From assembly GCA_002269645.1 (NCBI GenBank), contig NIVC01000245.1, forward strand, positions 496,001 through 560,000: a stretch of DNA of 64,000 bases. The letters are read 5' to 3'. Source of the stretch: Macrostomum lignano. Lineage: Eukaryota. Below, piece after piece: positions 7,575 through 30,974 of the stretch; the stretch's first letter is position 1; each line of letters begins with the position of its first letter. The notes below the pieces were generated by a model. It did no database searches and had not been told where the DNA came from. It saw only the letters and a program-made list of their open reading frames with translations. The translations under genes and the position numbers were made by a program.

Positions 7575-9134
7575 CTCTAAATTTCACAACGCCTAAAAAC
7601 ACTATGGAGGTACAATCTTTCATAAGACCTAAATTTCACAACGCCTAAAAACACTATGGAGATACAATCTTTCACAAGACCTAAATTTCACAACGCCTAA
7701 AAACACTATGGAGGTACAATCTTTCATAAGACCTAAATTTCACAACGCCTAAAAACACTATGGAGGTACAATCTTTCATAAGACCTAAACTTCACAACGC
7801 CTAAAAACACTATGGAGATACAGTCTTTCACAAGACCTAAATTTCACAACGCCTAAAAACACTATGGAGATACAATCTTTCACAAGACCTAAATTTCACA
7901 ACGCCTAAAAACACTATGGAGGTACAATCTTTCATAAGACCTAAATTTCACAACGCCTAAAAACACTATGGAAGTACAATCTTTCATAAGACCTAAATTT
8001 CACAACGCCTAAAAACACTATGGAGGTACAATCTTTCATAAGACCTAAATTTCACAACGCCTAAAAACACTATGGAGATACAATCTTTCACAAGACCTAA
8101 ATTTCACAACGCCTAAAAACACTATGGAGGTACAATCTTTCATAAGACCTAAATTTCACAACGCCTAAAAACACTATGGAGGTACAATCTTTCATAAGAC
8201 CTAAATTTCACAACGCCTAAAAACACTATGGAGGTACAATCTTTCATAAGACCTAAATTTCACAACGCCTAAAAACACTATGGAGATACAATCTTTCACA
8301 AGACCTAAATTTCACAACGCCTAAAAACACTATGGAGGTACAATCTTTCATAAGACCTAAATTTCACAACGCCTAAAAACACTATGGAGGTACAATCTTT
8401 CATAAGACCTAAACTTCACAACGCCTAAAAACACTATGGAGATACAATCTTTCACAAGACCTAAATTTCACAACGCCTAAAAACACTATGGAGATACAAT
8501 CTTTCACAAGACCTAAATTTCACAACGCCTAAAAACACTATGGAGGTACAATCTTTCATAAGACCTAAATTTCACAACGCCTAAAAACACTATGGAAGTA
8601 CAATCTTTCATAAGACCTAAATTTCACAACGCCTAAAAACACTATGGAGGTACAATCTTTCATAAGACCTAAATTTCACAACGCCTAAAAACACTATGGA
8701 GATACAATCTTTCACAAGACCTAAATTTCACAACGCCTAAAAACACTATGGAGGTACAATCTTTCATAAGACCTAAATTTCACAACGCCTAAAAACACTA
8801 TGGAGGTACAATCTTTCATAAGACCTAAATTTCACAACGCCTAAAAACACTATGGAGGTACAATCTTTCATAAGACCTAAATTTCACAACGCCTAAAAAC
8901 ACTATGGAGGTACAATCTTTCATAAGACCTAAATTTCACAACGCCTAAAAACACTATGGAGATACAATCTTTCACAAGACCTAAATTTCACAACGCCTAA
9001 AAACACTATGGAGATACAATCTTTCACAAGACCTAAATTTCACAACGCCTAAAAACACTATGGAGATACAATCTTTCATAAGACCTAAATTTCACAACGC
9101 CTAAAAACACTATGGAGATACAATCTTTCATAAG
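7575..9134 (+). repeat. 52-bp tandem repeat, about 30 copies, with a 624-bp (12-mer) higher-order period
   Basis: Monomer aagacctaaatttcacaacgcctaaaaacactatggag(g/a)tacaatctttca(t/c). Rare variants recur 624 bp apart (aaac at 7790 and 8414; gaagta at 7971 and 8595). Confidence 0.95.
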
Positions 9135-9696: not shown

Positions 9697-11139
9697 TTGA
9701 AAAGACAACGCTTTTCCAGAGAACCCCGAAAACTTAACATGAAATCCAAGATGAGCACACCCATATGCATTTTTACACGCCAGATAGTACGCCAGATTTC
9801 AAAAAGTAAAAAATTGTACGCCAAGTGTGCACCAAAAGTCGTGAGTGTACGCCGGATTAATCCGGCGTACCACCCCTCTTCCGGACTATGGATTTTTACT
9901 GGTGTTGCAACTTGGAAACTTGAAAAAAAGTCTTCTAATTTTAAACTTTCGAAGTCCATTCAGGTAGAATCTTTTTTGTAATAAACTTTCCAAGTAGCGC
10001 TACCTGGTTTTGCAACATGAGAAACATTAAAACTTCATTTATGTACCACACTACCAAGTACCAGTAGCAACTGAGTCCTGACTTGAAAAGTTTGCAATTG
10101 AGGTAGCCAATTTTATTTTAGCAATCAATAATACTTGTATCCGTATGCTTGCCTTTTACTACGTAATTCACGCGTGCTTTTAGACGTTGTGAAATTTAGG
10201 TCTTATGAAAGATTGTCTCTCCATAGTGTTTTAGGCGTTGTAAAATTTAGGTCTTGTGAAAGATTGTATCTCTATAGTGTTTTTAGGCGTTGTGAAATTT
10301 AGAGCTTATGAAATACTGTGCACAACTTTTCGACGATGTGAAAATTAGGGTTTATGAAATTTAGAGCTTATGAAAGTTTGTGTCTTGCGACGTTGTGAAA
10401 TTTAGGGCTTGTGAAAGCGACCCGCTAAATGCAGTGTTCGCATACGTCATTGTTCCTGGCTGTAAAATTTTGTTTCTGTCTATCTAATGCGCTGTCCACA
10501 GTCACAGCAAACTCAATTACCGCTTTTATTGGGTATTTTGTGTGATGGCTGTTTTGCTTCCGTGACAATTATTGCAGACAGAGTGTCCATTGGTTGAGCA
10601 ATGATGCACGGAAGCAATTATCTACGAAGTAGCTCAATGTATTGGCATTGTTTCGACTAATGAGCGTGGATAGTATCCTTTTGATGTCAATTTATATATG
10701 GCTAATTTTTTGTTAATCAAATAAACATCAATAAAACTAAGTAAAAACACTGTATGTTTCCATAGCAAAACAAGCGGATCACGACAATGCTGCAGAGCAA
10801 ATAATTCAATTTGCAAATTAAAGACGTCAGACTGGCTACATGTGATCAGTCTGAATTGTTCAGAGCCTTCACCGACAACACTGCCGCCTCTGGTTGACCG
10901 ATAGAAAAGTAACAGAGCATTCACATAGTTATTACATTGTAACAAAATTCCTGGGTTACTTATAGGGATTTTTGAGCAATAGGACAAGCAAGATTCTCTA
11001 TTTTTTTGGCATTTATGACCGTAATAATTCAATTTATGAGCGTAATAATTTAGGGCGTTAACGGTATGGAAATCCGCGTCAAAATATATTCTATTATAGG
11101 GTCAAAGTTTCATGCTTTAATAGCGCAGAATTTTTACAG

Positions 11140-12714: not shown

Positions 12715-13496
12715 TCTAGTATACCTTTTCCACTCCAAGTCTGTCACAAGTAACTTCAAATCTGCCGTAGATAGCAGAAAGGCATACATTCAGCTCGCAA
12801 GCCGAGCGCCAACTTAAGAGTCTATGGTTAAAGCTCAGATCAATTCTGTCAAAAGTAATTTCAAATCTGTCCACTGAACAGATAGGGAGTTGGAACCAAA
12901 GCAGTAAAGACTAGAAAACTTCTTTATAGACAGACCCAGATTTTAACAGTGAAACTTATTCGTCTATGGCAATCTTATATATAAATTCTGTCACAAGTAA
13001 GTTCAAATCTGTCAGAGATATATATGTTGGTTAGAGAGCTGGGTGATCGCGCCGCCGCAGCGCAGGCTGCGATGACATTGCACAACTGGCGACTGAGCAT
13101 TCTGATTCGCGAATTGCATGCCAGCATGCCTCATCTGACACATGACCACTTCCTACGATGGCACCTGCACACGTTGAGTTACGGACAGGCCTGCTTGGAT
13201 CGTCGCGATATTTTTGTTTGAAATATCTATGCAACTGATTGACTGTAGCAGACATGTTAGCATAGTGAATTACAGAATTTGTTGCTTTAATTTGAGAGCA
13301 CTGTTCAAAATAAACCTTTGTTTCGTTATCTGTTCAGTGGACAGATTTGAAATTACTTTTGACAGAATTGATCTGAGCTTTAACCATAGACTATTCAGTT
13401 GGCGCTCGGCTTGCGAGCTGAATGTATGCCTTTCTGCTATCTACGGCAGATTTGAAGTTACTTGTGACAGACTTGGAGTGGAAAAGGTATATTAGA
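12715..13496. mobile_element. MITE-like element with about 165-bp terminal inverted repeats
   Basis: 12715-12883 (tataccttttccactccaagtctgtcacaag...ccactgaacagata) is the near-perfect reverse complement of 13327-13496. A subterminal motif is repeated internally at about 12987-13012. Superfamily not determined. Confidence 0.85.
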
Positions 13497-14507
13497 CTGT
13501 TAGACTGAATATATATTAACGAGTAGCTTTGAGCTTCAGCTTTGACTGAAAAAGTGATCAAACCACTAAAATGCTTTATCCGTCCAATCTGTCTATGGCA
13601 TCTCACTAACTCTATGGCACTGTTTTGTACCCGAACTGTTAACTGTTAACTAGGGGTACATGCTGTATACTTACTCGTAATTCGAAACATATAGGCGCAA
13701 GGATCATATATACACAAGATGGGCCACTAATTAACCGCTTATGTGGTCACAGAAGCCAATGTAAACAATTCTGCATCTCGTAATAGCGCAAAATTCAACT
13801 ACTCAACTCAATTTTGTCAGTAATATCCGCAGTGCATGTATCATTCTTAATTTGATTGAGTAGCTTTTTATTTAATTCATGAAAAATTCTATCACATTCT
13901 CAAAAAATAGCGTCTATGTCCCTAAGCTACTGAACTCAAAATTTAAGCAACCCATGTCGGCTTTCTTCGCACTTTTCACGAAAAACAGCGGTCGAGCTTT
14001 CCCTATTGCCGCAATACAAATGGCCTCTCTGCGGAATATAAGATCTATAGCCGAGTCTAGTTAATCCGGTCTAGTAAGCAGCCTAGATAAGATGAAAGAA
14101 GTTCTCTCAAAAGCAAGAATAAACCTTGTTGTGGAGCTGGAGTTGATCCAGAGAGACTATAGATGTCGACAGCGAATGTTCCGACTGGTGCCTCAACAAC
14201 CAGTTTCTGATATAGAAATAGAAAATTATTCGACTCACCAGGTAGCTGATTAATCTCGTTGAATTGGTAGACACAAATTTACGAAGACGAAAACCAAGCA
14301 ACAAGAGCCTGTCATTTATGCTGCAGTTGGATCTATCAATGTCAAACCTTGGAACAGGATGTTCGCGTCAAACCTGGCCACTTTTAGATAGTCTAGCCCG
14401 TCTGGGTTAGTTTTTATGCGAACAGCCCAGAGTCACTCACTACACTAAACTCATACGTGGGCATTGCTTAGGTGTCAAAGCAAATAGAATTCACTTTTCG
14501 TCCCTTG

Positions 14508-14545
14508 CTTATTGGGCGCCCCGAAGGGGGGCACTAGATTGCTAG
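14508..14545 (+). mobile_element. Solo Helitron 3' terminus of the unit-4 subfamily
   Basis: cttattgggcgccccgaagggggg-cactagattgCTAG|T is almost identical to the unit-4 end at about 59716-59755 (hairpin cccc-gaag-gggg, then CTAG). Confidence 0.75.
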
Positions 14546-14958
14546 TCACTGCACTAAATGCCTACTTCTACTAAGGGTCCTGAAAGATTCGAGATACTAA
14601 GAAATAAGCAGGTAGATAGTGAAAAGGGACGAACAATGCAGGTATCTTTTCTACATAGAGCCAATTGCGAAAGAAGTTTGTAGGCAATGACTATCTGTTA
14701 AATATAATATACATTTGCACTTCAATGCTAAGACATTCTTATAAAAATGTACAATTCTGTTTTCAATTAACGTTTTTATGACATGCTACCATACTTATTT
14801 TGGCCGGAATCTGAGTCATAGCCGCTAATCTTCCAATCGTACCCTGGAATTGGTTAGAAACTGTGATTCGTTAAAAACTCACTACACAAAAAGGAGCTAT
14901 TAAAGTACAGTAACTAAAATGATTGTTGTCTTAATCCTTTCCAAGAACTTTGTTAACG

Positions 14959-17900
14959 ATGTTGCCGATAGCATCGGTGCTATTGGCATGCTTTGTGTCA
15001 GCCACCTCTGGCCTGGACTTCAAGCTGGCAGTTGTGATTGAGCAGAATGCAGTGAGCAGCTCCCTAATCGACCTGGCTGTGAGCAGACGGGTGAACTCGA
15101 ACTGGAGACTGTTGCCAGGCCACTCAATGTCGCATGCGATCGTGCAGGTATCCAAGGATGGAGCTCAGCAGGCTGCTAAGGAGGGTGAGTAGCTTGGCTG
15201 CAAGCATGCCATGCTTGAGTAAATTAGATTTAAAATTATTCGTTTGGTTAGTCTGACGCAATTATTGAATATCTATACATTTGGGTTGTGGTTGTAGTTT
15301 TGACTATTGTCTTTTATTGTGCTCGAAATACATGAGAGTAAGGGTAAGCGTTAGCTTAACTCAATTCCAGTGTGCTCTCAGTCCAGTCTGTCAGCTCTTC
15401 TGGCAATCGGCAGCTGCGGTCTCCTCTCGGACCTGAGCTCGCTGTCCAAGTCCCTGCAACTGCCGTTCATCGCCCTTCCAACCGCTCTGTGCAGCAGCAC
15501 ACATTTTCGTGAGTAAAGTTAAATCATGAGTGTTAAACAGACTTGTTTATCTTACATTCTGTACAGTTAGCAGCTTTCAATTTTGGCTATCATTACAAGC
15601 GAAGTAAATCAAGTAAGGAATGGATTTTCTCTTGTAAATTGATTGACAGTTATAAAAAGTGTTTACTAACTACAATCGTATTTTATTACTGACTACCAAG
15701 AGTTATCCCACAAAAGTCTGATTTGACAGCAATAGACTTGACATTAACAGTTGATATTCAGGCTATTAATGTCAGACAATTGTTCTGTCTGTGGTAATCA
15801 AATGGGAACACCTATTTATCGATTTATCAAAATCGATATGCATATCATATAGCTGCAATAATACCAGTCAATATTTCTCTCGTTCTAAAATAAGATGCGA
15901 AAATAACTTTTTCTGATGTCATGTACTTTTAGAGTTTCAGAAGTTTCAGACTTTAATATTGTGCAGAGATACTTTATTATTTCCTTGCAGACTACGGCGC
16001 TGTTGGTAGCCACAGGGTGACTGAACTACTGGAAGCAACCGTTAAAACAATTTCAACACTTGAGGAAAAAAGAGGTCATCATATTTTACGACATGTCTCA
16101 GGGTAAGCTTGGAAAATCTAATATATTAAACAGTAATGCACAGGGATCCTTTCACTAGTAATATTTGCCCTCTTCACTTTTGGGGCAACAAAGAAAAGAA
16201 TATTTTTCTGAATAAAATGTAGATTTTGAAATTTCACAGGCAACAACTGCTAGTTTTTTTAGGAAAATGAAAGCCTGAAAGCCAGCTTATTAGCAATTCC
16301 CCCATAAATCTTTTGTGTTTGACATGTCTCCTCTTCTTTTGTGCTCGGCATGACGATGTTTCTCCCAACTTTCCCATCCTATTTGTCTCATCGTTCGCGC
16401 TTTCAGTCAGCGCAGCCTTCTTTGAATACATAATTTGCGATTGCTTTGTTTAATGAGCTCCAAACTGTTGGGAAGTCATTTCAGGCTACAAAGAGACTTT
16501 AAAAATTAGCTAGCTTTTAGTTAGCAAGCAAGATCAAAGAGGACTTCTTTCGTCCATTGAATTGCATATCGATTCATTAGTTCGCCCTTTAGAGCAACTC
16601 CGAGCTATTTATATTTCAAAGAAAGCAAGCATCCTGACGCCACGATGACTGACTACTTGAGTTCGTGTGTACTATAAGACAAGTCGATTTCAGCCTCTGA
16701 AATGATGCAACTGTATTATTGATAATAGTGCCAGCTAGCAGAAGCTAACAAAGATTAAGCTTTGCTAGTCTAGGAATAACTAAATGAACCCTGACACTAA
16801 GGAAGCTACTGAGACACCAAGGCTCAGACGAGCTTGTTATCAGTCGTAAAGCCTTTTCTTGTCTTCTTCATCTTCTTATGGTCTGAAAAGCTAACAGTAG
16901 TGACTATGCTCGTGTTCACAACTTATAGCGTGCAGTTTGTACTTTTTCCCAATAACTACGCTCTTATTAAAGAACACTGAAGAGTTTTAATAAGCCGTCC
17001 ATGCTTTGTCAATGATTAACTTCCCAAAGAAGCTACATGTAAGTAAGACTAGTCTAAGGTACCAAGACAGAATACCACGTCCGGGAAAACTATTCGAGAC
17101 AAGGTTCTAAGCATGCGGCCCGTTTTGACCTTAAAACTTGATGCAAAATTCGCGTACACTTGTGCAGACACTATTATTTATCTAATTTCAAAGAGAATGG
17201 CTTCATACAGCTGCTGCAGACGCGACTCTCGAGCATCGGCATCAGCTCCGTCCCTTTTAACGCCGACCCCACGCTCAGCGGAGATCTTCTCTCCGAGAGG
17301 CTCAGACGCCTCATGAAGAAGCGCCTGTTCAACGCCATCGTCATGGCGACGCCTCGCAACGCGCAAAGCATCGTGGCAGCCGCTGCGAACGCCAGCGTCA
17401 TGCAGCAGAACTACTTCTGGCTCGTGATTGACAGCGGCGGACTCAGCAAGTCCCACCTGATGAGGGTGTGTCCCAACAACTGCAACCTGGCTCTGCTCAG
17501 AGGAGGCACAACTGGCGTCAATTCGGGTGAGCGCCAGCTGCCCTGCCCTGCCCTGCCCTGCCCTGCCGATCTTGCTAAAATACCTTTTGATCTCTCATTT
17601 CTTGCATTTTCTTCCATTTGTCGTTTAGTAATTGTAGGTAATTCTTCCTGTCATTGACATTACAAGCCTGTAGAAAAAAGGCTATTACTTAGTAACTCAT
17701 TTGATCTCGTTATTATATTATGACGCCAACATGATACAGTCTACACTGACTTTTCTCGAAAAAAATTGTCTATGGCCATTGACTACCTCCAAAAACAGTC
17801 TCTACCTATGCCAAGACAAGGAATTCTAAATCCAAGACTAAATCTAAATTTAGAATTTTTTGACCAAGACTGTGTGCTATTGTCTCTCTAGACAATAGAC

Positions 17901-18470
17901 TTTTAGACTATAGGGAAACTATTCAATCACATACACTCACAGAAGAATATTCCAATAATACTCGATCTCCCATCAACCGAAATCTCGCACAGACACTGGA
18001 CATCCGTCTCGTGGATGCGATCGAGGCTCTGGCGAAGGCTTTCACAGACTCGCTGGCTCAGCCGGGATTCCAAGAGAGCAACGCATCATGCTTTCCTCTG
18101 CAGCCGTGGTCGTCTGGCGCTCAAGTGCTCAGCAAAATCATGTCTGTGAGTTCGTGCTCGCAGCATTTGACAGCCCACTTTATTGTACATTCCACTGCTC
18201 ATCATTAACTGATCTCAGATATGAGCAGTTGCAGTCGCCGCTGTCTCATTTCAGCTATCGAGCTTCGACTCGGGTCGCGGTGAGATTTCCTACAACTCGA
18301 CAACAGGATTCTTCAACGCTCAGGGCGTTGAGATCGTTGCATCATTCACTGAGCAGGTGGGAGCGGCAGCTCGGTTCCAGCTGAGCGGTCGGTTCAGCAG
18401 CGGCTCGCTGACGAAATTGTTTCAGAAGAGCGGCGGTGCATTTGTGTTTCCCAACACCTTCACAGGGTGA
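14959..18470 (+). pseudogene. iGluR-like paralog C: exons 1-6 only (signal peptide + ATD), ending in an in-frame TGA; carries a +1 nt lesion (exon 3) and a -62 nt lesion (exon 4)
   Basis: Exons 14959-15184, 15371-15508, 15991-16102 (112 nt versus 111 in A/B; extra A near 16065-16071), 17194-17526 (333 nt versus 395), 17993-18145, 18255-18470 (...FPNTFTG*). Default reading is a pseudogene; possible rescue by cryptic acceptors is covered in findings. Confidence 0.85.
17541..17565 (+). repeat. (CCCTG)5 in intron 4 of C; same site as the arrays in A and B
   Basis: gtgagcgccagctg followed by ccctg x5. Confidence 0.9.
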
Positions 18471-20720
18471 TGTTCGATCGATTTTTTGCAGTTTTTGGAC
18501 AACCTGCCTTTGGGCGAAACATTTTCAGAGGTTTTTATGAAAGTTTTTATTGTACTTTTAGCCCATGCTGGTATTTAGTTGGCTTATTTCCCACTCGCGG
18601 CTTCTTTCGACAACAATTTTATCGATCAAGTTTTTAGATTGTGTCGCACCTGCTATTATGCAAGTGTATCAACGACCAGTGAAGGAATTACGACCGTATA
18701 ATTATAAGTTTAAAAGTTCTAGTATTGAACCAAAAATTGAGCTGCAAAGCCAAAGCGAGCGACGTGGAAACAGAGGGCGGCGTGCAGATAAATAAGCGGG
18801 TGAGCAGCCCCCACCCCACAGAGGGGTAGAAAGGACGGCGCACAAAGGCGGCACAATGTACAGCGCGAGGGGTGGATGGCTAACACCATTTCACTCCAGG
18901 CTCACAAAGGATCAAAAAAAGATCACAAAAAGTGATCGAAACACTAAAACGGACAATGGTTTATCCGTTTAATCTTTCTATGACAAAATATAGCCGTGTT
19001 ATGCGTAAAATCACGGAAGTAGATTAAATTTATTAACTTGAAATGGCTTATTGGCACTGATCATTTTCTAAATAACTCACTTATATGAGTCACAAAAATC
19101 GCACTTTATTCGTGTACTCTAAAGTTAATAATCTTTGTACTCGTATCTTTTTTCAGCTTTAATTTCTTCACCCATTTGACTAATAAATTTGACTAAATTT
19201 TTTACGAAGAGCTACCGTACGCTCGTACATACCCAGCATCTGAACTAGTTTTATTCAACTGAAATGAACAATTAAGATTTTTCCATACGACTCCTTCCTA
19301 TCACTTGACGAAAACCGTGTATATGACGGGTACAAACATTTCTGCAAGTACCGCGGTTGCATCTAGGTTTTTATTAAACTTAATTTATGATAAGAAGAAT
19401 TAAAATATAGCTAGTAGAAACACTAGAATTCCTGATATGGAACAAACTACTGATTAAAATATCATTAGTAGCAACCGAAGCTACATTTTCTCAAAATTTC
19501 ACACACCAACTATGGACAACTGTGTGATTGCCCATTCAATCGATAAAATAGCTCTTCTGCTATTTATAATCGATATAATCTATAATCATCTGCAATGCAT
19601 GTAACTCTTCGGCTGCTTCTGCCCACTTCGTGAGGGCTACTACAATTACTCCCAATAATTTTAAGGTAAATATCTCTAAACCCTTTTCTCCATAGCACTT
19701 TCAAACGTAGCTTGCGAATTAGCATACATGTATCTTCACAAATTTTCATTCTTTGAATTGTAGTCTTGGATAAGAAAAAAGTTCTTATGAAACAGCAACT
19801 TTCTACAATACTACAGAGCTCGTACAGAGCGACACTAACGTCTTGAGAGTGACAGCCTTTAGCTTTAGTACAAGATGTGCAGCAGAATACTCCGTAGAGA
19901 GTTGCAAGCGTTTTTACGTGTTTTTGTTGCTCGATTTTACGCAAGTTCTGTGTTGGATTTTGGGTAGCTCATGTATCAAATAAAAGGAAAACTATATCAG
20001 AGTGATTTAGATTGCATTGTTTGATTGCCTCTGTATTGTGTTTCAATAGAAGGACTTAATAAACTTGTTCAAAGTAATGCCAGTCATAGCTGGGTGATTC
20101 AGTAGTCACAGACGGTCATTCTGCTGGGTCGACCCTACTGTTCGCGCAGCAGTCCAGCCGCTTCAGTCTCGCCAGCACCAACTCGCCAGCCAGCAGGAGC
20201 AGACCGACAGCAAAGAAGCAGCCGGTGACAACAAAGCAGCCGGCCACCGTGTCCAGACCGATTGACTCGGCGCCAGTGTAGCTCGCGTCACTATCGCCTT
20301 CGCTGCACTGGTCATCAGAGTCGGTCTTGTAATACTTGTCGAATAGCAGCTGGAGCTGACCGGTCTCGCTGAGTTTGCTCAGACTGAAAAATAGGTACAG
20401 TTTGTTTAAATTTGGTGCAAATTTGATTTTGCAGTGCTGCGGATGCACAGGGAGTTATAATTTGCGAAAAAATGCAGCAATGTTTCAATGCGTTATGAAA
20501 ATTTCAAAAACAAATAAGGAACCGCTCAATTTTCTTAAAAAATTCAGATGCTGGAAAATACAAGAAATGACGATTGCTACGGAGAACCACAGAACACGGA
20601 GAAAGTAAAAAAACAATTAAAGAACCAACAATCAATTCTGGCTACTTTTAAAGACCACAAACATGAAAGCAAAATAAGTGCGGTTAAAAGAGCAGAAGCT
20701 ATCATAAAGCAATTTTAAAG
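18466..20720. repeat. Segmental duplication, copy 1 (partner: 28683-30493 plus 49570-49683)
   Basis: Collinear diverged matches, e.g. gtgatgttcgatcgattttttgcag / gtgatgttcagtcgatttttgaag; caagtgtatcaacgaccagtgaagga / caagtgtgtcaatgaccactgaagga; exon 12 of B versus D; intron 11 of B versus D. Confidence 0.85.
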
Positions 20721-23700
20721 CATTAAAAATCCGCGCCTAGGTATTGCATCACGACAGCTTTTAAAGTGCTCGTAAAAGCAAAAGGCATACTCCCTCTGCG
20801 TCTTACTAAAAGTCCACCGCCGGACCGTATATGGCGTCCTCGGGATAAGTGAACGCTACGGTTGCCGCGTTGAACAAATCGTCAGCTACGTACGCCTTCT
20901 TGCAGTTGGACCGGGCAACGAAACGCATCCGGGAAGCGTCGCCAAGACAAGCTACGCTACCAGTTTCCAGAGTCTGAAAATGTTTTGACAGAAGGTTAAA
21001 CGTGCTAAATATCCTGCATCAATGACTACTGAATCAAACGACTGCGCACCTCGTACGGACAGTTCGGCGCGTCCAGAAGCAGGCCTCCAATTTCGCCGTA
21101 GATGCCAGAGTCGGACGACTTCATCAACTGGTGAGCGCTGGTGCCGGGTATGGCTCCGGGTCTGATGGCAGTCTGGGAGGCCAAGTCCTCCAGCGTTTTT
21201 ATTGGTAGCTGGGTCACACTTACCGTCAGCATTGAGGTCAGAAACGCTGTGATATGGAAGATAAGCAAGAATTGCAAGTTTTTACTCATTTAAATGATTT
21301 ACCACTCGCACCCCGAGCTCACCAGTGTAGGCCGCATACACAATCACTTGGAAGAAGAACCAGAATGCCAGAGAAACTCTTGGCGACGTGGCGAACGGAT
21401 AAAAGTCCTGGCCCTGCTGCATGAAACAGCCAGTGACGCACCACAGGTATTCGAAGTAGCTGATCTCGTCACGGATCGAGTACTCGAGTTGCAGATTGTA
21501 GGCTGAGAACGGAGAGTAGTAAGCCATGATCCAGACGAAGAATGCGGCCACAAACAGAGAGGCAGCCAGACACAGCCACAGCTGCCACGTCAATGGAAAG
21601 AAAACATTCCACATCTTGGTGGCCGGCTTTGGTTTCGGAACCAGGATGGCGTGGTATTCAGCGAAGAGCGCGGCGGAGTAGTCGATCACGGCGTCACGAA
21701 CAGTTGTCTTGGTGAATAATCCAGCTCCAAGGCTAACAATCTAGAAAAAGAGAAATTATGGTTTGCCCTCCTAAAACGGTATAAAAAGACACTACAAATT
21801 AAACAAAATGTTCTCACGTCTTGCTGCAGCTCTCCAATGCAGCCAGTGAAAAATGGCGAGCCTGCAACGGGAGCGCCCGGCTGGCCGTCCGAGGGCCTCT
21901 TCAAAATATACCTGCATCGGTATCGTTTGACGTGACCGTTAGTATTGCTTTTTATGTAGACTTTATAATAAGTAAAACAATTTATTTGTTACTTGAGCTC
22001 CTTTCCTGTGCAATCCTTAGGTCTCTCCGAACACCTTGGTAATCGCTGAACTTGGCAACGACACATTTATTGGAAGTGGCTTCGTTCCTGATTTGGTGGA
22101 ATACCTTTCGAAGAAGTTAAACTTTCGGTATGCTTTTTATTTTAAACAGTTAACGTACAGTCGGAGCACAAATCATAATTGTAGCATTGTTGAACCCCGT
22201 GAAGGTGTTGGGAAACACGAATTCAGCGCCGCTCTTGTGGAACAGTTTCGTCAGCGAGCCGCTGCTGAACCGACCGCTCAGCTCGAACCGAGCTGCCGCT
22301 CCCACCTGCTCAGTAAATGACGCAACGATCTCGACGCCCTGAGAGTTGAAGAATCCTGTTGTCGAGTTGTAGGAAATCTCACCGCGACCCGAGTCGAAGC
22401 TCGATAGCTGAAATGAGACAGAGTGGCGAGTGCAACTGCTCAAATACCTGTAGACCTGTTAATAATGAGCAATGAAATAAGCGTCGAAGTGAGCAAAAAC
22501 GCTGCAATGAAAAAATCAAATGCAGAAACCAAAAACTCACAGACATGACATTGCTGAGCACTTGAGCGCCAGACGACCACGGCTGCAGGGGAAAGCATGA
22601 CGCGTTGCTCTCTCGGAATCCCGGCTGAGTCAGCGAGTCTGTGAGAGCCTTCGCCAGAGCCTCGATCGCATCCACGAGACGGATGTCCAGTGTCTGTGCG
22701 AGATTTCGGTTGATGTTAGATCGAGTATTAATGTGAGCACAGTTACACTGCTGCTGACTATTACTGCTCAAATAGATTCAGAGCAAATCGAGCAGAGCAA
22801 AGCAGGGCAGGGCAGGGCAGGGCAGGGCAGGGCAGGGCAGGGCAGGGCAGGGCAGGGCAGGGCAGGGCAGGGCAGGGCAGGGCAGGGCAGGGCAGGGCAG
22901 GGCAGGGCAGGGCAGGGCAGGGCAGGGCAGGGCAGGGCAGGACAGGCAGGGCAGGGCAGGGCAGGGCAGGGCAGGGCAGGGCAGGGCAGGGCAGGGCAGG
23001 GCAGGGCAGGGCAGGGCAGGGCAGGGCAGGGCAGGGCAGGGCAGGGCAGGGCAGGGCAGGGCAGGGCAGGGCAGGCAGGGCAGGGCAGGCAGGGCAGGGC
23101 AGGGCAGGGCAGGGCAGGGCAGGGCAGGGCAGGGCAGGGCAGGGCAGGGCAGGGCAGGGCAGGGCAGGGCAGGGCAGGGCAGGGCAGGGCAGGGCAGGGC
23201 AGGGCAGCTGGCGCTCACCCGAATGCTGTCGGTGTCGCAGCTCGGAAAGACGTCTCTCACTGCAGGCGGACAGTCCGATGGCCGATTGACGCCAGTTGTG
23301 CCTCCTCTGAGCAGAGCCAGGTTGCAGTTGTTGGGACACACCCTCATCAGGTGGGACTTGCTGAGTCCGCCGCTGTCAATCACGAGCCAGAAGTAGTTCT
23401 GCTGCATGACGCTGGCGTTCGCAGCGGCTGCCACGATGCTTTGCGCGTTGCGAGGCGTCGCCATGACGATGGCGTTGAACAGGCGCTTCTTCATGAGGCG
23501 TCTGAGCCTCTCGGAGAGAAGATCTCCGCTGAGCGTGGGGTCGGCGTTGAAAGGGACGGAGCTGATGCCGATGCTCGAGAGTCGCGATTGCAGCGATTCT
23601 AAAACTCTTCCTCCTGCAAATATTTGGAAAAGTTTGAGGAACTTTGGAATTTATTCATGTCACCTATACTGAGTAGTCACAATCATGATTTAATAGTATT

Positions 23701-25134
23701 TTGACACTACCTACCATTTGTCTGGTCATACAAAATTGCAATCTCTTCCGCTCGAGTGGACTCCATTACAGAAATTGCTGCGTCCAGAATCACAGATGTT
23801 TCGTGGTTGCCGAAGACCCCAAATGCTGCGGGTTAAATATGATAGCTTTGTGGAGTCAAACAAGCCTCTTTTCTTTATTAAAGACAAAAAGTCTCTTTGA
23901 AGTGGGTGCGCCTGTTGGTCTCTGTTTCCTTGTTCAAAACAGTCAGACACTGGACCTGCCGTTTATTATATTCTTGTTGTCAGAATCGCTGTCAACACGG
24001 AAATTTCTCTCGGCTGATCAATTCAAATCAGACTAGAAATTATTTTGACATGGCATGCAAACCTCCGCTTGCTTGATACTTGATACGACTTAGTGCGATG
24101 CTAAGCTTGAATCGTTTAGGAAGTTGTTGGAGCATTCCCTCTTTGGTTACTCTTCTGATTTTTCAAGCGAACTGGATGTTAGCAATAGCATTGACCACTC
24201 GACTGCTCACGAAGTTTAGTGGGGCTGCACAGAGCGGTTGGCAGGGCGATGAACGGCAGTTGCAGCGACTTGGCTAGCGAGCTCAGCTCCGTGACGAGAC
24301 CGCAGCTGCCGATTGCCAGTAGAGCTGACAGACCATCCTGAGAGCACACTGGAATGGCGAGTAACATAGAGGATATTTAGCTGGGACGGAGCCGAGGAAA
24401 AGAATGGGTCAAAAACAAGCAGTATCGGCCAACTAGAGCTCGAAAATACACTTTTACTCGTACATTATTTTAGCAGCAGTTGAATTTTTAGAGAAGACTG
24501 CTGACGATACAAAAATTTGGGAGTAAGTAGATAGCTTGTGGGGTACAGGTGTAGTAAGTATAATAGAGTTAATTATATAAAAGGATTCCAATTTTACACA
24601 ACAAATGCAGGTTAAGCATTGATGTTTTCGACTGCCATTGGACTCACTGCTAATCATCAAGGCTAATGTTGGTGGGTTGGATCTTATCAACCCGCTAGTA
24701 TACTCGGTTAATATAATGTAGGTGAAATTGTAATGCAAGCTTAGTGAAGTTTCTCGGAGCAAAATACAATCGAGTGCAATCCTAGATGCGCACTGGTGCT
24801 ACCAAAAAAATTTAAGGACTCGTAGGGGTGTCGAAGTTCCGGAACGTACCAAGCCCTGTGGAATTGAGTCTCTGAAGTGATAGCAAACAAAATAGCTCAG
24901 TCATTCACCTTCTTTAGCAGCCTGCTGAGCTCCATCCGCGGGCACCTGCACGATTGTGTGCGACATTGAGTGGCCTGGCAACAGTCTCCAGTTCGAGTTC
25001 ACCCGTCTGCTCACAGCCAGGTCGATGAGAGATTCATTTACAGCATTCTGCTCAATCACAACTGTCAGATTGAACTCCAGGCCTGAGGTGGCGGATGTTA
25101 AGTACAGAAAAAGAAAATATTGTAACAGCTTCAT
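20116..25134 (-). CDS. Ionotropic glutamate receptor-like paralog B; 12 intact exons (840 aa if all are joined), but exon 7 is on the opposite strand, so status is unresolved (recent pseudogene, trans-spliced, polymorphic inversion or misassembly)
   Basis: Minus-strand exons: 25134-24909, 24348-24211, 23825-23715, 23613-23219, 22693-22541, 22407-22159, [exon 7 on + at 22021-22127], 21911-21818, 21740-21323, 21246-21050, 20973-20807, 20383-20116. Exon sizes and phases match A. Motifs FTKTTVRDAVIDYS, GCFMQQG, AYTAFLTSMLT. No stops in any exon. Confidence 0.85.
22021..22127 (+). CDS. Inverted exon 7 of paralog B (start of the S1 ligand-binding lobe)
   Basis: ccttag|GTC TCT CCG ... AAC TTT CG|gtatgc. 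It is 107 nt, phase 0 to 2, exactly like exon 7 of A. VSPNTLVIAELGNDTFIGSGFVPDLVEYLSKKLNF aligns without gaps to DFPSAGLIEDLGDNFYKGYGMAPDILKYLASKLNF (14/35 identical). Confidence 0.93.
22803..23207 (-). repeat. (CCCTG)n / (GGGCA)n array, about 80 copies, intron 4 of B
   Basis: Read directly; same intronic position as in A and C. Confidence 0.97.
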
Positions 25135-25369
25135 TCCAGGACCGTCAATTTATTGATGCAATGGATTTCGAGTATTTTTTGAGTGGTAACTCGAGCTGAA
25201 TCAGGCTTTTTAATGTAAATATGCACCATGCTAGCCAATAAGAAATTCTAGCCAATTGCAGGCAACATTTAGCAACTTTTTAAACTATTTTTAAAGCTTT
25301 ATCTAAAGCGAATATCATTTTATTAAGTGCTAATTTTTTAACAAACCTTGTTTTTTCACTAACAATGAT

Positions 25370-25513
25370 AACAACAACAGTAACAACAACAACAAAAACA
25401 ACAACAACAACAACAACAACAACAGCAACAACAACAACAACACCAACAAAAACAAAAACAACAACAACAGCAACAACAACAACACCAACAAAAACAATAA
25501 TACCAACAACAAT
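25370..25513 (+). repeat. Imperfect (CAA)n trinucleotide microsatellite just upstream of paralog B
   Basis: Read directly from the sequence. Confidence 0.95.
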
Positions 25514-25769
25514 GGTGTCAGCCAGCGGAAGTCATTGGTCGCCAGGAACTAGCTCAATGGGCGATCTCCGCCTCCTCGCTGCATCCGCCTTACGATAAGT
25601 CAAGTTAATTCAAGACGTTGTCAGCCAGTCATGCGAGTCATAAAAGGCAAAGAAACCGTACGTGAGCACATACTAACACAGAGTTCACAGTGGACTTGAT
25701 TTTCTCATCGCACCTAACACAAGGAAAATTAACGACACCCAAAAAATCGGAGTTAGAAACCGGATCCGA

Positions 25770-25890
25770 GGTTTGACTTTTTGGAAAATCTGGCAAATAG
25801 GCTTGGTGCGGTAGCACCTGGATGCCAGTGCTGCCTAGGTGATCCTTGTTCTTCACCGACACATACGTTGTCCTAGCATGGGACCCCACC
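25770..25890 (-). mobile_element. Possible highly decayed mariner transposase fragment
   Basis: Minus-strand translation SHARTTYVSVKNKDHLGSTGIQVLPHQAYLPD resembles the mariner HDNARPH...EVLPHPPYSPD block. The similarity is weak. Confidence 0.35.
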
Positions 25891-26189
25891 TAGCAGACAC
25901 TACATGCTGCATATCTCATCAATATGTCTTTTCATGTCTTCTACAACCTTCCTCTCCATGAGATGTCCGCCCACCTCAATCGGGTTCTCAACAATTGCAA
26001 TTTTCTTGCCAGCAGTGCGAGACCGTCTGACCCATCAAAGCTGGAGCGCAGTCGGTCGATGATGCGGCAGACTTGACTTTGGGACAGACCCCATCCTTGG
26101 TAGGTGTCCTACAAGTATTAATCATTCCAAAGCCAATTTCCCTGCCTCAAAAAATAGCGTAGGGGTAGCCTCAGGTATGAAAGTTCTTA

Positions 26190-26690
26190 CGAGGGACACT
26201 AAAAAAGCCCACTGCTGCTGGACTTTCTGCCGCACAAGCAGACAGTCACGGGTGCCTACTACGCCGATCTGATTGCCCTCAAGGCCTCAAGGCAATCAAG
26301 GAGAATCGGCGGGGAGTGCTGAGCCGTGGTGTAGTGCTGCTGCAGACCAACACACCTGCCCACACCAGTGGACTGACAAAGACAGCAGCTGTCAGCGTAT
26401 CAGAGCTGCCACAACCCTACCTATTCACCAGACCTTGCCCCCAGCGAATTTCACAGCTGTTTCCGCATCTCAAGCGGGCACTCCGTGGGCAGCGATTTAA
26501 CACTGATGATGCACCGGAGGATGCTGCGACCTCCTGGATCGAGGGGTGCTCAACGCAGTTTTTCAGAGTGGTATCGAAGCACTGCGATCAAAATGTCACA
26601 AAAGTGCATCTTGGTAGAAAAAAGCTGGTTGTATTTGCCCCAATTCTCTCTCCGTCACACCGAGGCTCAGAACCTTTTCAGTGCCCCTCG
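26190..26690 (+). mobile_element. Internally deleted mariner (Tc1/mariner) element, 501 bp, TA target duplication
   Basis: TA|CGAGGGACACTAAAAAAG ... CCTTTTCAGTGCCCCTCG|TA termini. Frameshifted transposase C-terminal motifs: LLDFLPHKQTVTGAYYADL, RGVVLLQTNTPAHTS, YSPDLAPS-like, LFPHLKRALRGQRF. Confidence 0.9.
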
Positions 26691-27149
26691 TATATAAGTG
26701 AGCGGCCAAGAGATGGCTTCAGAAAGAAAGCTTAAAATGATGGACAGTTTTGTTGCTCATATTTGTCCAGGACTACTGATTTCAAGGGACGGGGAACTAG
26801 CGAGATCAAAGTTTTTTAAAAAAGCTGACAGATACCTCTGACTTACCTCGATAAAATTCGGAAGTGCAATACTTCATTTCTCACGTTTGCTTTTATCTTT
26901 TGGCTCGTGAAGGCTCGGACGGTCTGCTTCTTTGATAAACGTTCATTTTGTTTGAAGCCAGACACGCAGTCTGATCAGCGTGTAGCTGGTGTGTAGAAGA
27001 AGTTTATCGGAAGCTGAATTCAGTAGTTAAGAAGACTAAAAGATTTTGTGCTATATGTGTGAACCGATAGGAAAAAATTAAAACATTGCAGCCTCTAGAA
27101 CTTTTCTCCATTAATCGCTAGTTTCCTCTCTAATAATGAATAATGATAA

Positions 27150-27385
27150 GATTTGAAGACACCAGCCCTAATGGGCGATTAGTAACCGACTCTGAAGGCT
27201 GCGTACGGCTGTTCAGTCCAAGGACTGAGTGGTCGCCACACAGCCTCAATTCCTAATTCTGGTGCATTTCACAAGAATTGTGTGCTGAAACAATGCAGAG
27301 TTGAGCGTCTTGCTCCAGGACACAAATGTTTTAGTGTGATCGGGATTCAAATCCCCGGCCTTCCCCGTCTCTAGAATGTAGTAGT
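27150..27385 (+). mobile_element. Possible SINE-like fragment
   Basis: Contains cttgctccaggacacaa...cgggattcaaatcccc, resembling the common CTTGCCCAAGGACAC...GGATTCGAACC block of metazoan SINE tails. Boundaries are approximate. Confidence 0.3.
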
Positions 27386-28186
27386 TCCTGTGTACAACAA
27401 TTTTTTATCAATGCATCAAGACAATTTTACAAGAGCATCAGTCCTATATTTTGACGGAAATCTCTCGTAGGAATCAAATGGGTCTTCTAATGCTTGTTAT
27501 GAGTAGTTCTAACTCGTGTCATAGCAAAAGAGTAAAAGCACTTAAAAATCGTACAGTTTATCAGTTCATTGCCCATGATATGATATTATTTATGATATGT
27601 TATGATTATTTTGGTTCATTCATTCGGAAGTTTAACTTCGAACTTCCAAGCAAAAACTTCCCTACAGAGGTTGCCAGCAGCAAGCTCTCTCATAAATTCT
27701 TTCTCAGCCTTCAAACCTCAGCCTTTTGAATTTTGAGCTCATTGAAATCATGTCTAATCATCGACTTCCATGCAGAAATGATCAGCATTATCAACCTTCT
27801 CCGTCTATTCCTGTCTATTGTAACACGATATACGAAGATTACAATACTACTCAATGCTTGGTTTGTCTTGCGCTCAAAACTAAGTATTGAATCCTACATT
27901 TACACGTCTGTTTTGATTTGCATCCTTATCCTGATGATAACTATGGGGTAAAGAGGTCAAGTTTTCGAGACTTAGTTTTATTTCTACTCATAAACGACAA
28001 TAAACTCCCTGATTTCTTTAGAGGTATTAGAGATCGAATTATTGAAGCGTTCTTCTAAGCCTTTTTAATGTTCGAAATGTGCGCTGCAAAATATAAGGTT
28101 TTGAAGAAGTTTTTTCAAAACGACAGCCGCAACTGCGGATTTTAAAAGCGCTCCCTCAATTATTTGTTTTTCTGTTGCTCCCACAG

Positions 28187-28686
28187 ATGGACAATAACAA
28201 CAAGGTCGCTTGCATGGGTGACGTAGCACTGATCGAATACCTGGTGCAAATGAACTGCAGTCGCTGGTACTTATAGTCAAGGAAGTTTTCAACGCCGCGA
28301 CTGTGGCCTTCATAATGCCAGAGGATGCTGTGTACGGAAAGGCTGTCAACTACTATAGTAAGCGAATTTTCATTTATCGATGACGACTACGCACGTAGAG
28401 CTTTGATCAGTCAAAAAGGTTGGTCGCAACCCTGCAAATTTTATTCAGCATGCACCAACTACACGAGGCAGGCCAGATCCCGATGCTGAAACAGAGATAC
28501 TTCCAGCCGGAGACTGGTGCGGCCTGTGTCAGAAGAACCTCGAGCAACGCTGGGTCCGTCGATGCGATTAATTTAGGCATTGTGGCGGGTCCGTATGCGG
28601 TAGCCGGCTGTTTCTACGCGATGGGCTTGGCGCTGCTTGCTGGAGAATTCGTGGCAGCCCGGCGGCTTCACCCTTCACCGACGTGA
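28187..28686 (+). pseudogene. iGluR-like 3' remnant C': exon 11 (28187-28357; two 2-nt TA insertions, in-frame stop) and exon 12 (28429-28686)
   Basis: VACMGDVALIEYLVQMNCSRWY / EVFNAATVAFIMPEDAVYG is homologous to exon 11 of A and B. The exon is 171 nt versus 167 in B. Exon 12 encodes M4 and a stop. No exons 8-10 were found on the plus strand upstream. Confidence 0.85.
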
Positions 28687-29930
28687 TGTTCAGTCGATTT
28701 TTGAAGATTTTGGAGAACCTACTTTTGGCGAAAAAATTGGCAAGTGTGTCAATGACCACTGAAGGATTTATAAGCTGAAATCTTTAGTATCTAAAGTAGC
28801 GTGGATCACTAAAAATATAAAACGCATTTTCCATCAAATATTTTCATGAGGCAATAGCTGTGTTAGTACGAGTACTCGAAATAGGTATTTTGTATAAAAT
28901 GACGAAATGAACTTGCATTGGTTGACGTGAAGCGGCGTATTGACACTTATAAATTTTCTATAAAGTAACTCACTTATATCTACCAATCTAAATTTTCCTC
29001 TCCCTATTTGTATGCTCTGAATTTGTAAATGCGGCTATAGCCTATATCTATTATAAGCCTTGTTTTCTCAATTAAGCCTACTAAGATTTCATTAGTAGAA
29101 TCTCTCATGAAGCAGGCGCATGCTTGCAGCCTCTGCTCGGGTTTAAAAAGCCATTTTAAGCAGCTTCAATTCAATAATTCTACTAGCTAATAAATTTGAC
29201 TAATTTCTTAACAGTTACTTACTCAGCATCTTAGCTGGTTTGAATGCGGTTTGTTGCATCAGTACGAGTCCTCTCTATCACTTTGACCCAAATCTATATG
29301 GCCCAGATTGAAGCAAAATTTCTGCAAATACCGCGGTTTTTATAAGTAGCTATAATATAAAAACGAAGAATTCCTGATTGAAAGCAAACTACTGATTAAA
29401 TTATCTTAAGTAGAAAGGAGAAAAAGGATTCCTACTAAAAAGCTCAGCAATTAATTATGGGCGACTTTTATGATTACCTGATTAAAAAAACGATTTTAAA
29501 ATAGCTAGCTAGTTCTCTTCTGCCAGAGGCTGAGGTCAGAGACTACTTTGAGTAGTCCCTGGCTGAGGTGTCTCTCACGCCCCATTCCCTATGCACACTT
29601 CAGGTGGGCTACAATTGCTCCCATGAATCATATAAAGGTAAATTTTCTTTTTCAATCCTACGAGTAATTCTCTGAGGCACTTTCAAAACTACCTTGCAAT
29701 TTAGCACTCCTTCACAACATTTGTCAATTGCTTTGAATTGTAGTCTTAGATCAGGGATTCCTGATCATGGAGTATTTGCTTGTATGAGTAAAAAATAAGT
29801 GAAAAAATATATCAGAATGATTTAGATTGCATTGTTTGTTTGACGCTGTGTTGCGTTTCAATAAGAGGACTTAATAAACTTGTTCAAAGTAATGCCAGTC
29901 ATATCTGGGTGATTCAGTAGTCACAGACAT

Positions 29931-30198
29931 TCATTCCGCTGGGTCGACCCGAGTGTTCGCGCAGCAGTCCAGCCGCTTCAGTCTCGCCAGTACTAACTCG
30001 CCAGCCAGCAGAAGCAGACCGACAGCAAAGAAGCAGCCGGTGACAACGAAGCAGCCGGCCACCGTGTCCAGACCGATTGACTCGGCGCCAGAGTAGCTCG
30101 CGTCACTATCGCCTTCGCTGCACTGGTCATCAGAGTCGGGCTTGTTGTACTTGTCGAATAGCAGCTGGAGCTGACCGGTCTCGCTGAGTTTGCTCAGA
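29931..30198 (-). pseudogene. Orphan exon 12 (M4 + C-tail) of paralog D, a duplicate of the 3' end of B
   Basis: Translation is nearly identical to B exon 12 (YYKT>YNKP, T>S, S>T). Intron 11 homology continues to 30493, resumes at 49570-49683, then ends. Confidence 0.88.
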
Positions 30199-30974
30199 CT
30201 GAAAAATAGGTACAGTTTGTTTAACTTTGTCTGTTTAAATTTGGCGTGACTTAAAATTTTGTGCATAGAAATTTATGACAAGGAAAAAACTGCCAAAATG
30301 TTTTGGTATTACTTCAAGAAAACTTTATCAAATTGAACGGTACTTGAAAGGAGAGACATTACCTCGCAAGAAGGCACTGAAGCGTTAGTGAAAGAAAGAT
30401 TTCCATATAAAATTGACTGCCAAGATGGCTATGGAGTAGCCGGATGGAAAGGTAAAAATAATTTAAAGAACTAGCAGTCAACACTAGCTACTATCTAAAT
30501 ATACTAAATCTTCCAATATACTAAAAATGAGTTGTCTGTCGGTATGCGATAGATTTCAAAAAAATTGGCTCAACCGATTTTCTTCAAACTTGCACCATTT
30601 GATCAGAAATTTTCCTGGCACGGTACATGCATCCTGGCTAAGAAATTGCTCAATATTAAAGGGATTAAATATTCGAAAAACATGCTTCTTTGCAAAGGTC
30701 AAGCAGCTCTTTCGACCTGAAATGCATTGTAAGAATGCTAGAGAAAAAACTGACTGACTGAATTCCAATTGTGATAAAGATTACATCACAACCAGTTGAA
30801 AACAGTGCCGAACAAATGCACACAAAACTTGATTTAAATTGCGTAACAATATTGCTAACTTAAATTGAGACTGATACTGGCTGACTGAGAAATTGATTAT
30901 GTCATAACTTTTTACTCTAACCGATTTGCTATAAGAATTTAATTATAAGGGCCACAATTCATGATCTCCAATTG

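Follow-up and report, generated by a model that had tools for sequence, protein, structure and literature searches.

A truncated iGluR gene copy of Macrostomum lignano, cut in its ATD-LBD linker and closed in frame by an ancestral stop codon, is probably a pseudogene

The window analyzed here, a 64,000-nt stretch of Macrostomum lignano DNA, contains a copy of an iGluR gene (copy C, + strand, exons 14959-18470) whose ATD exons run directly onto a stop codon that belongs to the far end of the gene. This raises the question of whether C encodes a secreted receptor derivative consisting of the ATD alone, as a first-pass annotation of the locus had proposed, or is a dead gene whose break happens to look neat. 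Very probably, C is a duplicated iGluR gene that has been truncated and is no longer functional, i.e. a non-processed pseudogene. We infer this absence of function from the two breaks in its frame and from the dead copies that surround it, which make an ordinary pseudogene the most likely explanation.

When the window was searched with paralog A (tblastn), A itself was found complete, B complete except for one inverted exon, C reduced to the ATD exons, and two further copies, C' and D, reduced to the last two exons and to one exon, respectively. Paralog A carries the Pfam domains ANF_receptor, Lig_chan-Glu_bd and Lig_chan, and the solved GluA1-4 and GluD1 chains align with it at E about 1e-37. 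Both A and B lie on the - strand and have clean 424-aa ATD frames with canonical splicing; the inverted exon of B is exon 7, placed on the opposite strand. C' had been treated as a gene with an exon 12, but it is a relic whose S2 exon is disabled by an in-frame TAG at 28274-28276 and by a frameshift. The neighbouring copies are thus degraded or dead, C' by its stop and frameshift, B by its inverted exon and D by its reduction to a single exon. A relaxed tblastn search upstream of C' for the S1, M1-M3 and S2 exons recovered the last two exons only, and the idea that C and C' are simply complementary halves of one gene was rejected on the same ground. Satellites of 18 kb and 8 kb adjoin the cluster. 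The best matches to the family outside Macrostomum are only 26-28% identical, which marks it as a divergent, Macrostomum-specific expansion. The coordinates of all features are collected in Table 1.

Table 1. Features of copy C, its junction and the compared copies (positions in the window)
Feature	Position	Strand	Remarks
C exon 1	14959-15184	+	ATG, ATD start, GT donor; tblastn match to A residues 6-85
C exon 2	15371-15508	+	about 90% identical to A and B
C exon 3	15991-16102	+	lineage-specific; nt identity with A and with B only about 60%
C exon 4	17194-17526	+	98.7% identical to B
C exon 5	17993-18145	+	canonical acceptor cgcacag/ACACTG, TLDIRLVD...
C exon 6 remnant	18255-18467	+	ends ...FVFPNTFTG; exon tail of 36 nt gone
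Break site in C, CCTTCAC-A-GGGT	18457-18468	+	pairs with CCTTCAC-C-GACGT at C' 28672-28684
C TGA stop	18468-18470	+	homologous to stop of C' M4 exon (28684-28686)
Post-junction island, first 58 bp	18467-18524	+	81% identical to C' 28683-28738
Flank X1, between convergent genes C and B	18467-20414	+	colinear with X2 (28683-30229)
Chain block	18660-18690		matches 28740-28770
Chain block	18996-19167		matches 28885-29068
Chain block	19154-19358		matches 29161-29338
Chain block	19412-19774		matches 29353-29754
Chain block	19978-20414		matches 29793-30229 (94%)
B terminal exon	20137-20382	-	flank X1 ends in this exon
B exon 6 (comparator)	22158-22407	-	break-point equivalent is 22194
A exon 6 (intact paralog, comparator)	4168-4417	-	runs past break-point equivalent 4204 into FKNATLVVCCPM
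C' relic, end of S2 and M4 exons	28205-28686	+	stop at 28684-28686
Flank X2	28683-30229	+	ends in relic D
D relic, lone terminal exon	29955-30197	-	94% identical to B terminal exon

The end of exon 6 of C reads CCC AAC ACC TTC ACA GGG TGA at 18450-18470, exactly as first described. To the left of the junction, C matches A and B through exon 5, intron 5 and exon 6, and the match stops precisely at 18468 (A 4204 at 91.8%, B 22194 at 88%; blastn). Beyond this point A and B stay in frame as FKNATLVVCCPM and FNNATIMICAPT, respectively, with 36 more nucleotides to the exon-6 donor. To the right, the proposed homology of the TGA and its 3' flank to C' was borne out: from 18467, which corresponds to the last base before the stop in C', C aligns with C' 28683-28738 at 47 of 58 identical positions (E 2.8e-7 in a window-wide search). 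This homology is real and not due to chance, since a colinear chain of 1.9 kb between C and C' begins at the junction. The first 58 bp stand out against the remaining X1/X2 flank, which is about 60-65% identical; considered as a shared 3' UTR element, this island is absent from A, B and D. No Rfam matches were obtained within 14000-31000 and no convincing ORF was found on either strand of the flank. For a segment at about 26180-26730, suspected to be a mariner-like transposase relic, Pfam returned no match at a threshold as loose as E = 1.

How closely does the cut follow the domain boundary? It had been placed exactly at the ATD/LBD boundary, and it does fall in the ATD-LBD linker; however, it precedes the exon-6 donor and is not an exon end. 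In a rough 827-aa model of A, the Lig_chan-Glu_bd match begins at residue 433 with profile position 27, which puts the first position of the profile only a few residues from the cut. In a refined 832-aa model of A, the alignment of GluA2 chains begins at residue 408-409, and the equivalent of the cut is Gly412. The S1 and S2 parts of Lig_chan-Glu_bd are absent from C in a tblastn search with A from 18470 to the terminal exon of B, and the pore and M1-M4 (Lig_chan), present in A, are likewise missing (tblastn). With its end at FPNTFTG-stop in the linker, the reading frame of C encodes no membrane segment.

The apparent precision has a simple candidate explanation. The GT microhomology reported at the junction is indeed there, as an overlap at 18467-18468, and 4-5 nt upstream of it both sites share a 7-nt identity, CCTTCAC (C 18457-18463, C' 28672-28678). 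Together these make the pair of break sites an imperfect direct repeat of 12-13 nt (CCTTCAC-N-G..GT), and a microhomology-guided rearrangement would therefore account for the neat position of the cut. We infer the following order of events and deletion mechanism. An old local duplication would have produced two copies of a convergent pair, each composed of a C-type gene (+) and a B-type gene (-) with flank X between them. A rearrangement in the first of these copies presumably brought the ATD-LBD linker of exon 6 up against the last base ahead of the stop codon. This was most likely a deletion, of roughly 2-3 kb by comparison with A and B, that was guided by the imperfect repeat and took the tail of exon 6 together with all exons for the LBD and the membrane segments. 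The second copy would have decayed to the relics C' and D. Later, C would have gained one base in exon 3 (+1) and lost 62 bp from exon 4, each change shifting the frame, and conversion from intact paralogs may keep exons 1, 2 and 4-6 fresh-looking. The in-frame position of the stop would be a by-product of where the microhomology lies, with a 1-in-3 chance for the frame, and should not be read as a sign that a soluble product was selected for.

That one deletion made C is thus plausible but unproven, because an insertion of the duplicated flank and gene B into exon 6 would leave an identical junction. Under such a duplicative insertion, which we consider possible but rather unlikely, a copy of the flank and gene B entered exon 6 of a full-length C gene and split it into C (exons 1-6) and C', the rest of the gene, which has since decayed to two exons. 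The order C(E1-6), X1, B, ..., C'(E11-12), X2, D is the exact outcome of a single [X+B] insertion, and by divergence C and C' fall in one lineage apart from A and B. However, the tail of exon 6 and exons 7-10 leave no trace upstream of C', so that an insertion needs further losses anyway, and the D relic requires a duplication of B as well. The present data fit both insertion and deletion and do not discriminate between them.

A third possible origin, an assembly artefact that fused two unrelated places, we consider exceedingly improbable. In its favour, M. lignano has a neopolyploid, repeat-rich genome (PMC10733133, PMC5704211), and near-identical paralog blocks are numerous in the window. 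However, misjoins arise in long near-identical repeats, whereas no more than 2-7 nt are common to the two sides of this junction, and what follows downstream is a colinear copy that is old and diverged. The same exon 5-6-stop structure is also spanned by UniProt A0A1I8H398, which may nevertheless come from the same assembly.

C shares the six-exon ATD structure of A and B and keeps its introns. Its start codon is intact, none of the six exons has a stop when read in its proper frame, and each of the five introns has GT-AG ends. The N-terminus, MLPIASVLLACFVSATSG, is hydrophobic and resembles a short signal peptide. Compared with the intact paralogs, C has three disabling lesions, i.e. the loss from the exon-6 tail through the last exon, the +1 in exon 3 and the -62 in exon 4. 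Both frameshifts listed by the first-pass annotation are real. Exon 3 measures 112 nt in C versus 111 nt in A and B, and the extra A in the run at 16066-16071 shifts the frame by +1. As this is a single base in a homopolymer, it may reflect an error of the assembly. At 17520/17521, at the end of exon 4, the 62-bp deletion shifts the frame and takes out the segment encoding RPSDCPPAVRDVFPSCDTDS, a conserved stretch of about 20 residues with two cysteines that is also preserved, both cysteines included, in the paralog proteins P0014 and P0029. The deletion is recent, as the surrounding sequence is 98.7-100% identical to B.

As assembled, the frame of C is broken after about 150 residues and meets a stop in exon 4 near residue 180. 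When the A-run is corrected, canonical splicing yields about 60 junk residues and then a stop early in exon 6. An uninterrupted frame from signal peptide to stop is therefore absent from C, with or without the +1, under canonical splicing. The exon 4/5 junction used here (DSIR/TLD) is backed by P0014 and P0029 (DWLR/TLD), and exon 5 starts with TLD in all UniProt models of the paralogs. Since exons 5-6 are out of frame with this paralog-supported junction, the FPNTFTG-stop end would never be translated. Of the proposed signal peptide plus ATD, the start codon, the signal-peptide-like N-terminus, the six ATD exons and the in-frame ancestral stop and flank are all in place, but the frame that should connect them is broken. 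The stronger proposal of a secreted ATD-only derivative is not supported: as assembled, the frame breaks in exon 3, and even with an assembly error there, the 62-bp deletion removes the cysteine segment and leaves the final codons out of reach.

A longer frame can be rescued. Only with a one-base correction in exon 3 together with a cryptic acceptor at 17942/17943, found in C only, do the exons give a 408-aa translation that ends FPNTFTG-stop and matches ANF_receptor (PF01094, 3.1e-15, residues 39-350), with 16 unrelated residues in place of RPSDCPPAVRDVFPSCDTDS. On these grounds C might be a working gene today, whose product of about 408 aa, secreted and composed of signal peptide and ATD, would serve as a decoy, an assembly modulator or a soluble binder. 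This frame is open given an A-run of 5 and the 17943 acceptor, the splice sites, start codon and signal-peptide-like N-terminus are intact, and the substitutions unique to C do not look neutral. We nevertheless regard a working gene as very improbable: it takes two separate rescues to repair a frame that ends so early as assembled, the repaired protein lacks two conserved cysteines, no gene model links exons 1-4 to exons 5-6, the adjoining copies are dead, and the clean exons are explained by gene conversion.

The substitution pattern deserves the same caution. Changes found only in C comprise 13 silent and 16 amino-acid-changing ones overall, counts that are confounded by gene conversion; without the N-terminal signal region, 9 amino-acid-changing versus 11 silent changes remain, where neutrality would give about 3:1. 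Pairwise dN/dS is 0.36-0.52 for C, similar to A versus B and again confounded by conversion. A, B and C are 88-99% identical in exons 1, 2 and 4-6, introns 4-5 included, and at least seven paralogs elsewhere in the genome have the same block. Exon 3 and the LBD/TM halves, in contrast, are far more diverged, and exon 3 is the sole ATD exon of C without sign of A/B conversion. Either conversion from intact paralogs or changes older than the truncation can account for the low ratio of nonsynonymous to silent changes in C.

A weaker form of the proposal holds that C was an ATD-only gene for a time after truncation and that its decay set in only recently. Given the identity of both its flanks to B, the 62-bp deletion arose after the last conversion by B; the stop is conserved, as are the initial 58 bp of the 3' flank, and the ratio of amino-acid-changing to silent C-specific changes is low. 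However, these changes are not datable relative to the truncation and may stem from a full-length ancestor or from conversion by the paralogs sharing the block, the one ATD exon without sign of A/B conversion is the frameshifted one, and the protein collections yielded no ATD-only relative. We therefore consider such an interval of function unlikely.

Apart from one short Logan contig, word-indexed and exhaustive HMMER protein searches for ATD-only relatives yielded M. lignano models alone, and the only protein ending at FTG in the protein collections is the automatic model of C itself. This model, A0A1I8H398 (122 aa, 'ANF_receptor domain-containing protein', M. lignano), is identical to exon 5, entered through its canonical acceptor, plus exon 6; it is partial, without a start codon, and the record is silent on truncation or function. 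No model in the protein collections joins exons 1-4 of C to exons 5-6. A literature search for Macrostomum glutamate receptors of this kind or for natural ATD-only proteins found nothing. The complete form of the proposal states that C is, or until very recently was, an expressed secreted ATD-only gene, created by a one-step microhomology-guided deletion that reused the ancestral stop and 3' UTR, with the exon-3 shift an assembly error and the 62-bp deletion bypassed through the C-specific upstream acceptor. In this combination it appears highly improbable. A product of this kind would be marked by peptides across ...GVNSEEYSNNTR... or by residues specific to C in exons 5-6.

Molluscan AChBP is a soluble homolog of the extracellular domain of nicotinic receptors, encoded by an intact, expressed gene and retaining the agonist-binding domain. 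C would resemble it in keeping, from a ligand-gated channel family, an extracellular domain alone, preceded by a signal peptide and lacking membrane segments. However, the analogy drawn between the two is loose: the frame of C is broken, and the ATD alone would remain, whereas the agonist-binding domain, which AChBP keeps, would have been lost. Compared with iGluRs of the AMPA, kainate and delta types, C has exons encoding an ANF_receptor-type amino-terminal domain but lacks the ligand-binding and pore domains altogether. A natural frame-broken glutamate receptor subunit gene with a truncated product is known in the human GRIN3B insCGTT null variant (PMC4358936). In that variant, 4 bases are inserted as a polymorphism into a gene that is complete in all other respects, while C has lost whole domains. 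C also resembles duplicated pseudogenes refreshed by conversion in multigene families: it keeps its introns, adjoins its paralogs, is near-identical to intact copies in patches, and has lesions that break its frame as well as a large internal loss. It differs from them in its oddly neat break, in a domain linker and in frame on an old stop, which looks designed.

An intact and expressed C would supply a soluble glutamate-receptor ATD of natural origin, and such a protein would offer a handle on the ATD's own role in subunit assembly, trans-synaptic binding and modulator binding. As a probable pseudogene, C exemplifies how a short imperfect repeat may yield a seemingly domain-precise deletion and how gene conversion may leave most exons of a dead copy clean-looking. 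Its main use would lie in the annotation of a neopolyploid, repeat-rich flatworm genome, where it counsels caution in reading function from tidy breakpoints.

The window has short GT-AG introns and a eukaryotic character, and the database proteins nearest to it are automatic gene models of the flatworm Macrostomum lignano, several of which match translated window exons with full or almost full identity. A rough protein of paralog A contains ANF_receptor, Lig_chan-Glu_bd and Lig_chan, the Pfam domain set of an ionotropic glutamate receptor, and can be aligned to solved chains of GluA1-4 and GluD1 (E about 1e-37). Five copies were mapped in the window by tblastn with paralog A as the query (Table). 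Among them, only A looks intact. The S2 exon of C' is frameshifted, and this copy also has an in-frame TAG at 28274-28276. Within B, the first S1 exon (…ELGNDTFIGSGFVPDLVEYLSKKLNFRY) stands on the + strand directly after exon 6, a small inversion that can be expected to disable B. The UniProt models of B, P0009 and P0002, stop at this exon or skip it.

Table. Positions of receptor gene copies, repeats and other elements in the window
Feature	Positions	Strand	Description
Paralog A	6747 to 910	-	complete
Paralog C	14959 to 18470	+	six ATD exons only
Paralog B	25134 to 20137	-	complete except first S1 exon on opposite strand (22021-22137)
Paralog C'	28205 to 28686	+	last two exons only
Paralog D	30197 to 29955	-	lone terminal exon
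Satellite arrays	31102-49185, 50698-58972, 60352-60781, 7566-9134, 10174-10313		units 23-bp (18 kb), 24-bp (8 kb), 52-bp (1.6 kb)
AGGGC/GCAGG microsatellite, intron 4 of A and B	4767-5133, 22802-23207		about 75-80 copies
AGGGC/GCAGG microsatellite in C	17538-17576		few copies only
Inverted repeat	12715-12884 and 13327-13496		170 bp, 98% identity, arms about 440 bp apart
Frameshifted ORFs	~26180-26730	+	...PTYSPDLAPSEFH... and ...LLQTNTPAHT...

From 30.5 kb on, satellite makes up nearly all of the window, and what looks like heterochromatin-like sequence adjoins the gene cluster. A short inverted copy of the 52-bp array lies at a distance of 1 kb. The inverted repeat is possibly a foldback or MITE-like element. 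The frameshifted ORFs bear a tentative resemblance to mariner/Tc1 transposases; a Pfam search gave no hit for them, even with the threshold at E = 1.

Exon 6 of C ends with ...CCC AAC ACC TTC ACA GGG TGA (18450-18470), as the first-pass annotation had read it. To the left, C matches A and B at the nucleotide level across exons 5 and 6 and the intervening intron 5, up to 18468, a position equivalent to 4204 in A and 22194 in B; exon 6 of A and B continues for 36 nt beyond this break, encoding FKNATLVVCCPM and FNNATIMICAPT, and is followed by a GT donor. On the right side, C from 18467 matches C' from 28683, the base preceding the stop of the C' M4 exon, at 47/58 identical positions (E 2.8e-7). 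Beyond it, weaker matches between the C and C' flanks continue in a colinear chain, whose last block (437 bp) holds the terminal exon of B and that of D; these two exons encode nearly identical peptides. On the strength of the match and the chain, the sequence beyond the C stop is a genuine and old duplicate of the intergenic flank that separates tail-to-tail genes of the C and B types. Every part of the first-pass observation was upheld, among them the homology of the sequence from TGA onward to the stop and 3' flank of C' and the overlap of the two sides by GT. GluA2 chains begin to align at residue 408-409 of a refined 832-aa model of A, in which the cut corresponds to Gly412; the cut thus lies within the ATD-LBD linker, in agreement with the proposed ATD/LBD boundary. 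Overall, the structural observation is correct and clearly exceeds chance.

The flank copies are only about 60-65% identical outside two islands, which makes the duplication an old one. The first island comprises the 58 bp past the stop (18467-18524 vs. 28683-28738, 81% identical); it is not shared by A, B or D and may reflect a 3' UTR element conserved in the C lineage, a short tract of conversion or chance. The second (19978-20414 vs. 29793-30229), comprising the terminal exon of B, the lone exon D and their surroundings, is 94% identical, far above the adjoining flank, which suggests a later conversion.

The 7-mer CCTTCAC is found at both break sites, 4-5 nt upstream of the junction; together with the bases that follow it (CCTTCAC-A-GGGT in C, CCTTCAC-C-GACGT in C'), it makes up an imperfect direct repeat of 12-13 nt. 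Repeats of this kind typically serve as the substrate when slippage or microhomology-mediated joining occurs. Joining guided by the repeat would place the right-hand break just before the stop codon, giving a mechanical reason for its position, and an in-frame stop would then be a 1-in-3 outcome. The junction as a whole probably formed via microhomology, which is also the best-supported explanation for the tidy break. The single deletion previously proposed, here estimated at about 2-3 kb against A and B and placed in one of two old duplicates, is the simplest history; however, a single full-length C gene whose exon 6 received an inserted copy of the flank and B would show the same order of parts, a possible, less simple course. 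Since the tblastn search with paralog A detected neither the exon-6 tail nor exons 7-10 upstream of C', further losses are needed under deletion and insertion alike.

The C gene retains an intact ATG, a hydrophobic N-terminus with the appearance of a short signal peptide, and GT-AG ends at all five introns, and its exons, each in its proper frame, contain no stop codons. The two frameshifts suspected earlier are both present: exon 3 measures 112 nt vs. 111 nt in A and B because its A-run at 16066-16071 is one base longer, and exon 4 has a 62-bp deletion (17520/17521) amid sequence 98.7-100% identical to B. As assembled, C is out of frame from the A-run, and translation ends after about 180 residues; because the run is a homopolymer, the extra A is possibly an assembly error. 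The normal exon 4/5 junction, fixed by database paralog proteins, is ...DSIR/TLDIRLVD... (matched by DWLR/TLD in paralogs P0014 and P0029), and gives clean 424-aa ATD frames in A and B. When this junction is applied to C, exons 5 and 6 fall out of frame even after correction of the A-run, and translation ends with ...SIELRLGSR-stop early in exon 6, so that the FPNTFTG-stop end is never made. A 408-aa frame with this end (ANF_receptor, 3.1e-15) is obtained only with one A removed and a C-specific acceptor at 17942/17943, and still lacks the conserved segment lost in the deletion, which encodes RPSDCPPAVRDVFPSCDTDS, with two cysteines that distant paralogs retain at the same spacing. Intron 3 of C (16103-17193) is about 1.1 kb vs. 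about 100-120 bp in A and B, probably reflecting an insertion.

An exhaustive search recovered UniProt A0A1I8H398, a 122-aa M. lignano 'ANF_receptor domain-containing protein' that corresponds exactly to exon 5 (with the canonical acceptor) and exon 6 of C and ends in FTG; this partial model, generated automatically, lacks a start codon. In protein collections with thin Macrostomum coverage, no model joining it to exons 1-4 was found, and no ATD-only relative was detected other than this model of C itself, an absence that is weak evidence given such coverage. A literature search for such ATD-only proteins found nothing.

Pairwise dN/dS over exons 1, 2 and 4-6 was 0.36 for C vs. A, 0.52 for C vs. 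B and 0.46 for A vs. B, and the changes unique to C comprise 13 silent and 16 amino-acid-changing ones (11 and 9 outside the N-terminal signal region). The pattern found in the suggested dN/dS analysis is below the neutral expectation, but it does not demonstrate function after truncation because these changes cannot be dated relative to it, the exons form a conversion mosaic, and the exon 5-6 block is common to at least seven paralogs elsewhere in the M. lignano genome. Among A, B and C, identity reaches 88-99% over exons 1, 2 and 4-6 and introns 4-5 (4191-6683, 14996-18468 and 22181-25095), while divergence is much greater in exon 3, in introns 1-3 and in the LBD/TM halves (40-69% at the protein level); the result is a mosaic produced by gene conversion. 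Exon 3, which carries a frameshift, is the sole ATD exon in which conversion from A or B is not apparent. The high-identity tract of A and B ends only 13 nt past the C break point.

With the end never reached through the paralog junction, lesions in exons 3 and 4 and damaged neighbours, the first-pass interpretation of C as a secreted ATD-only receptor derivative was not sustained. It is very unlikely that C is currently a functional secreted ATD, and a functional phase in its past is a small possibility. The best-supported reading is that C is a duplicated, truncated and further damaged copy of a receptor gene, which owes its tidy break to microhomology and its clean exons to gene conversion.
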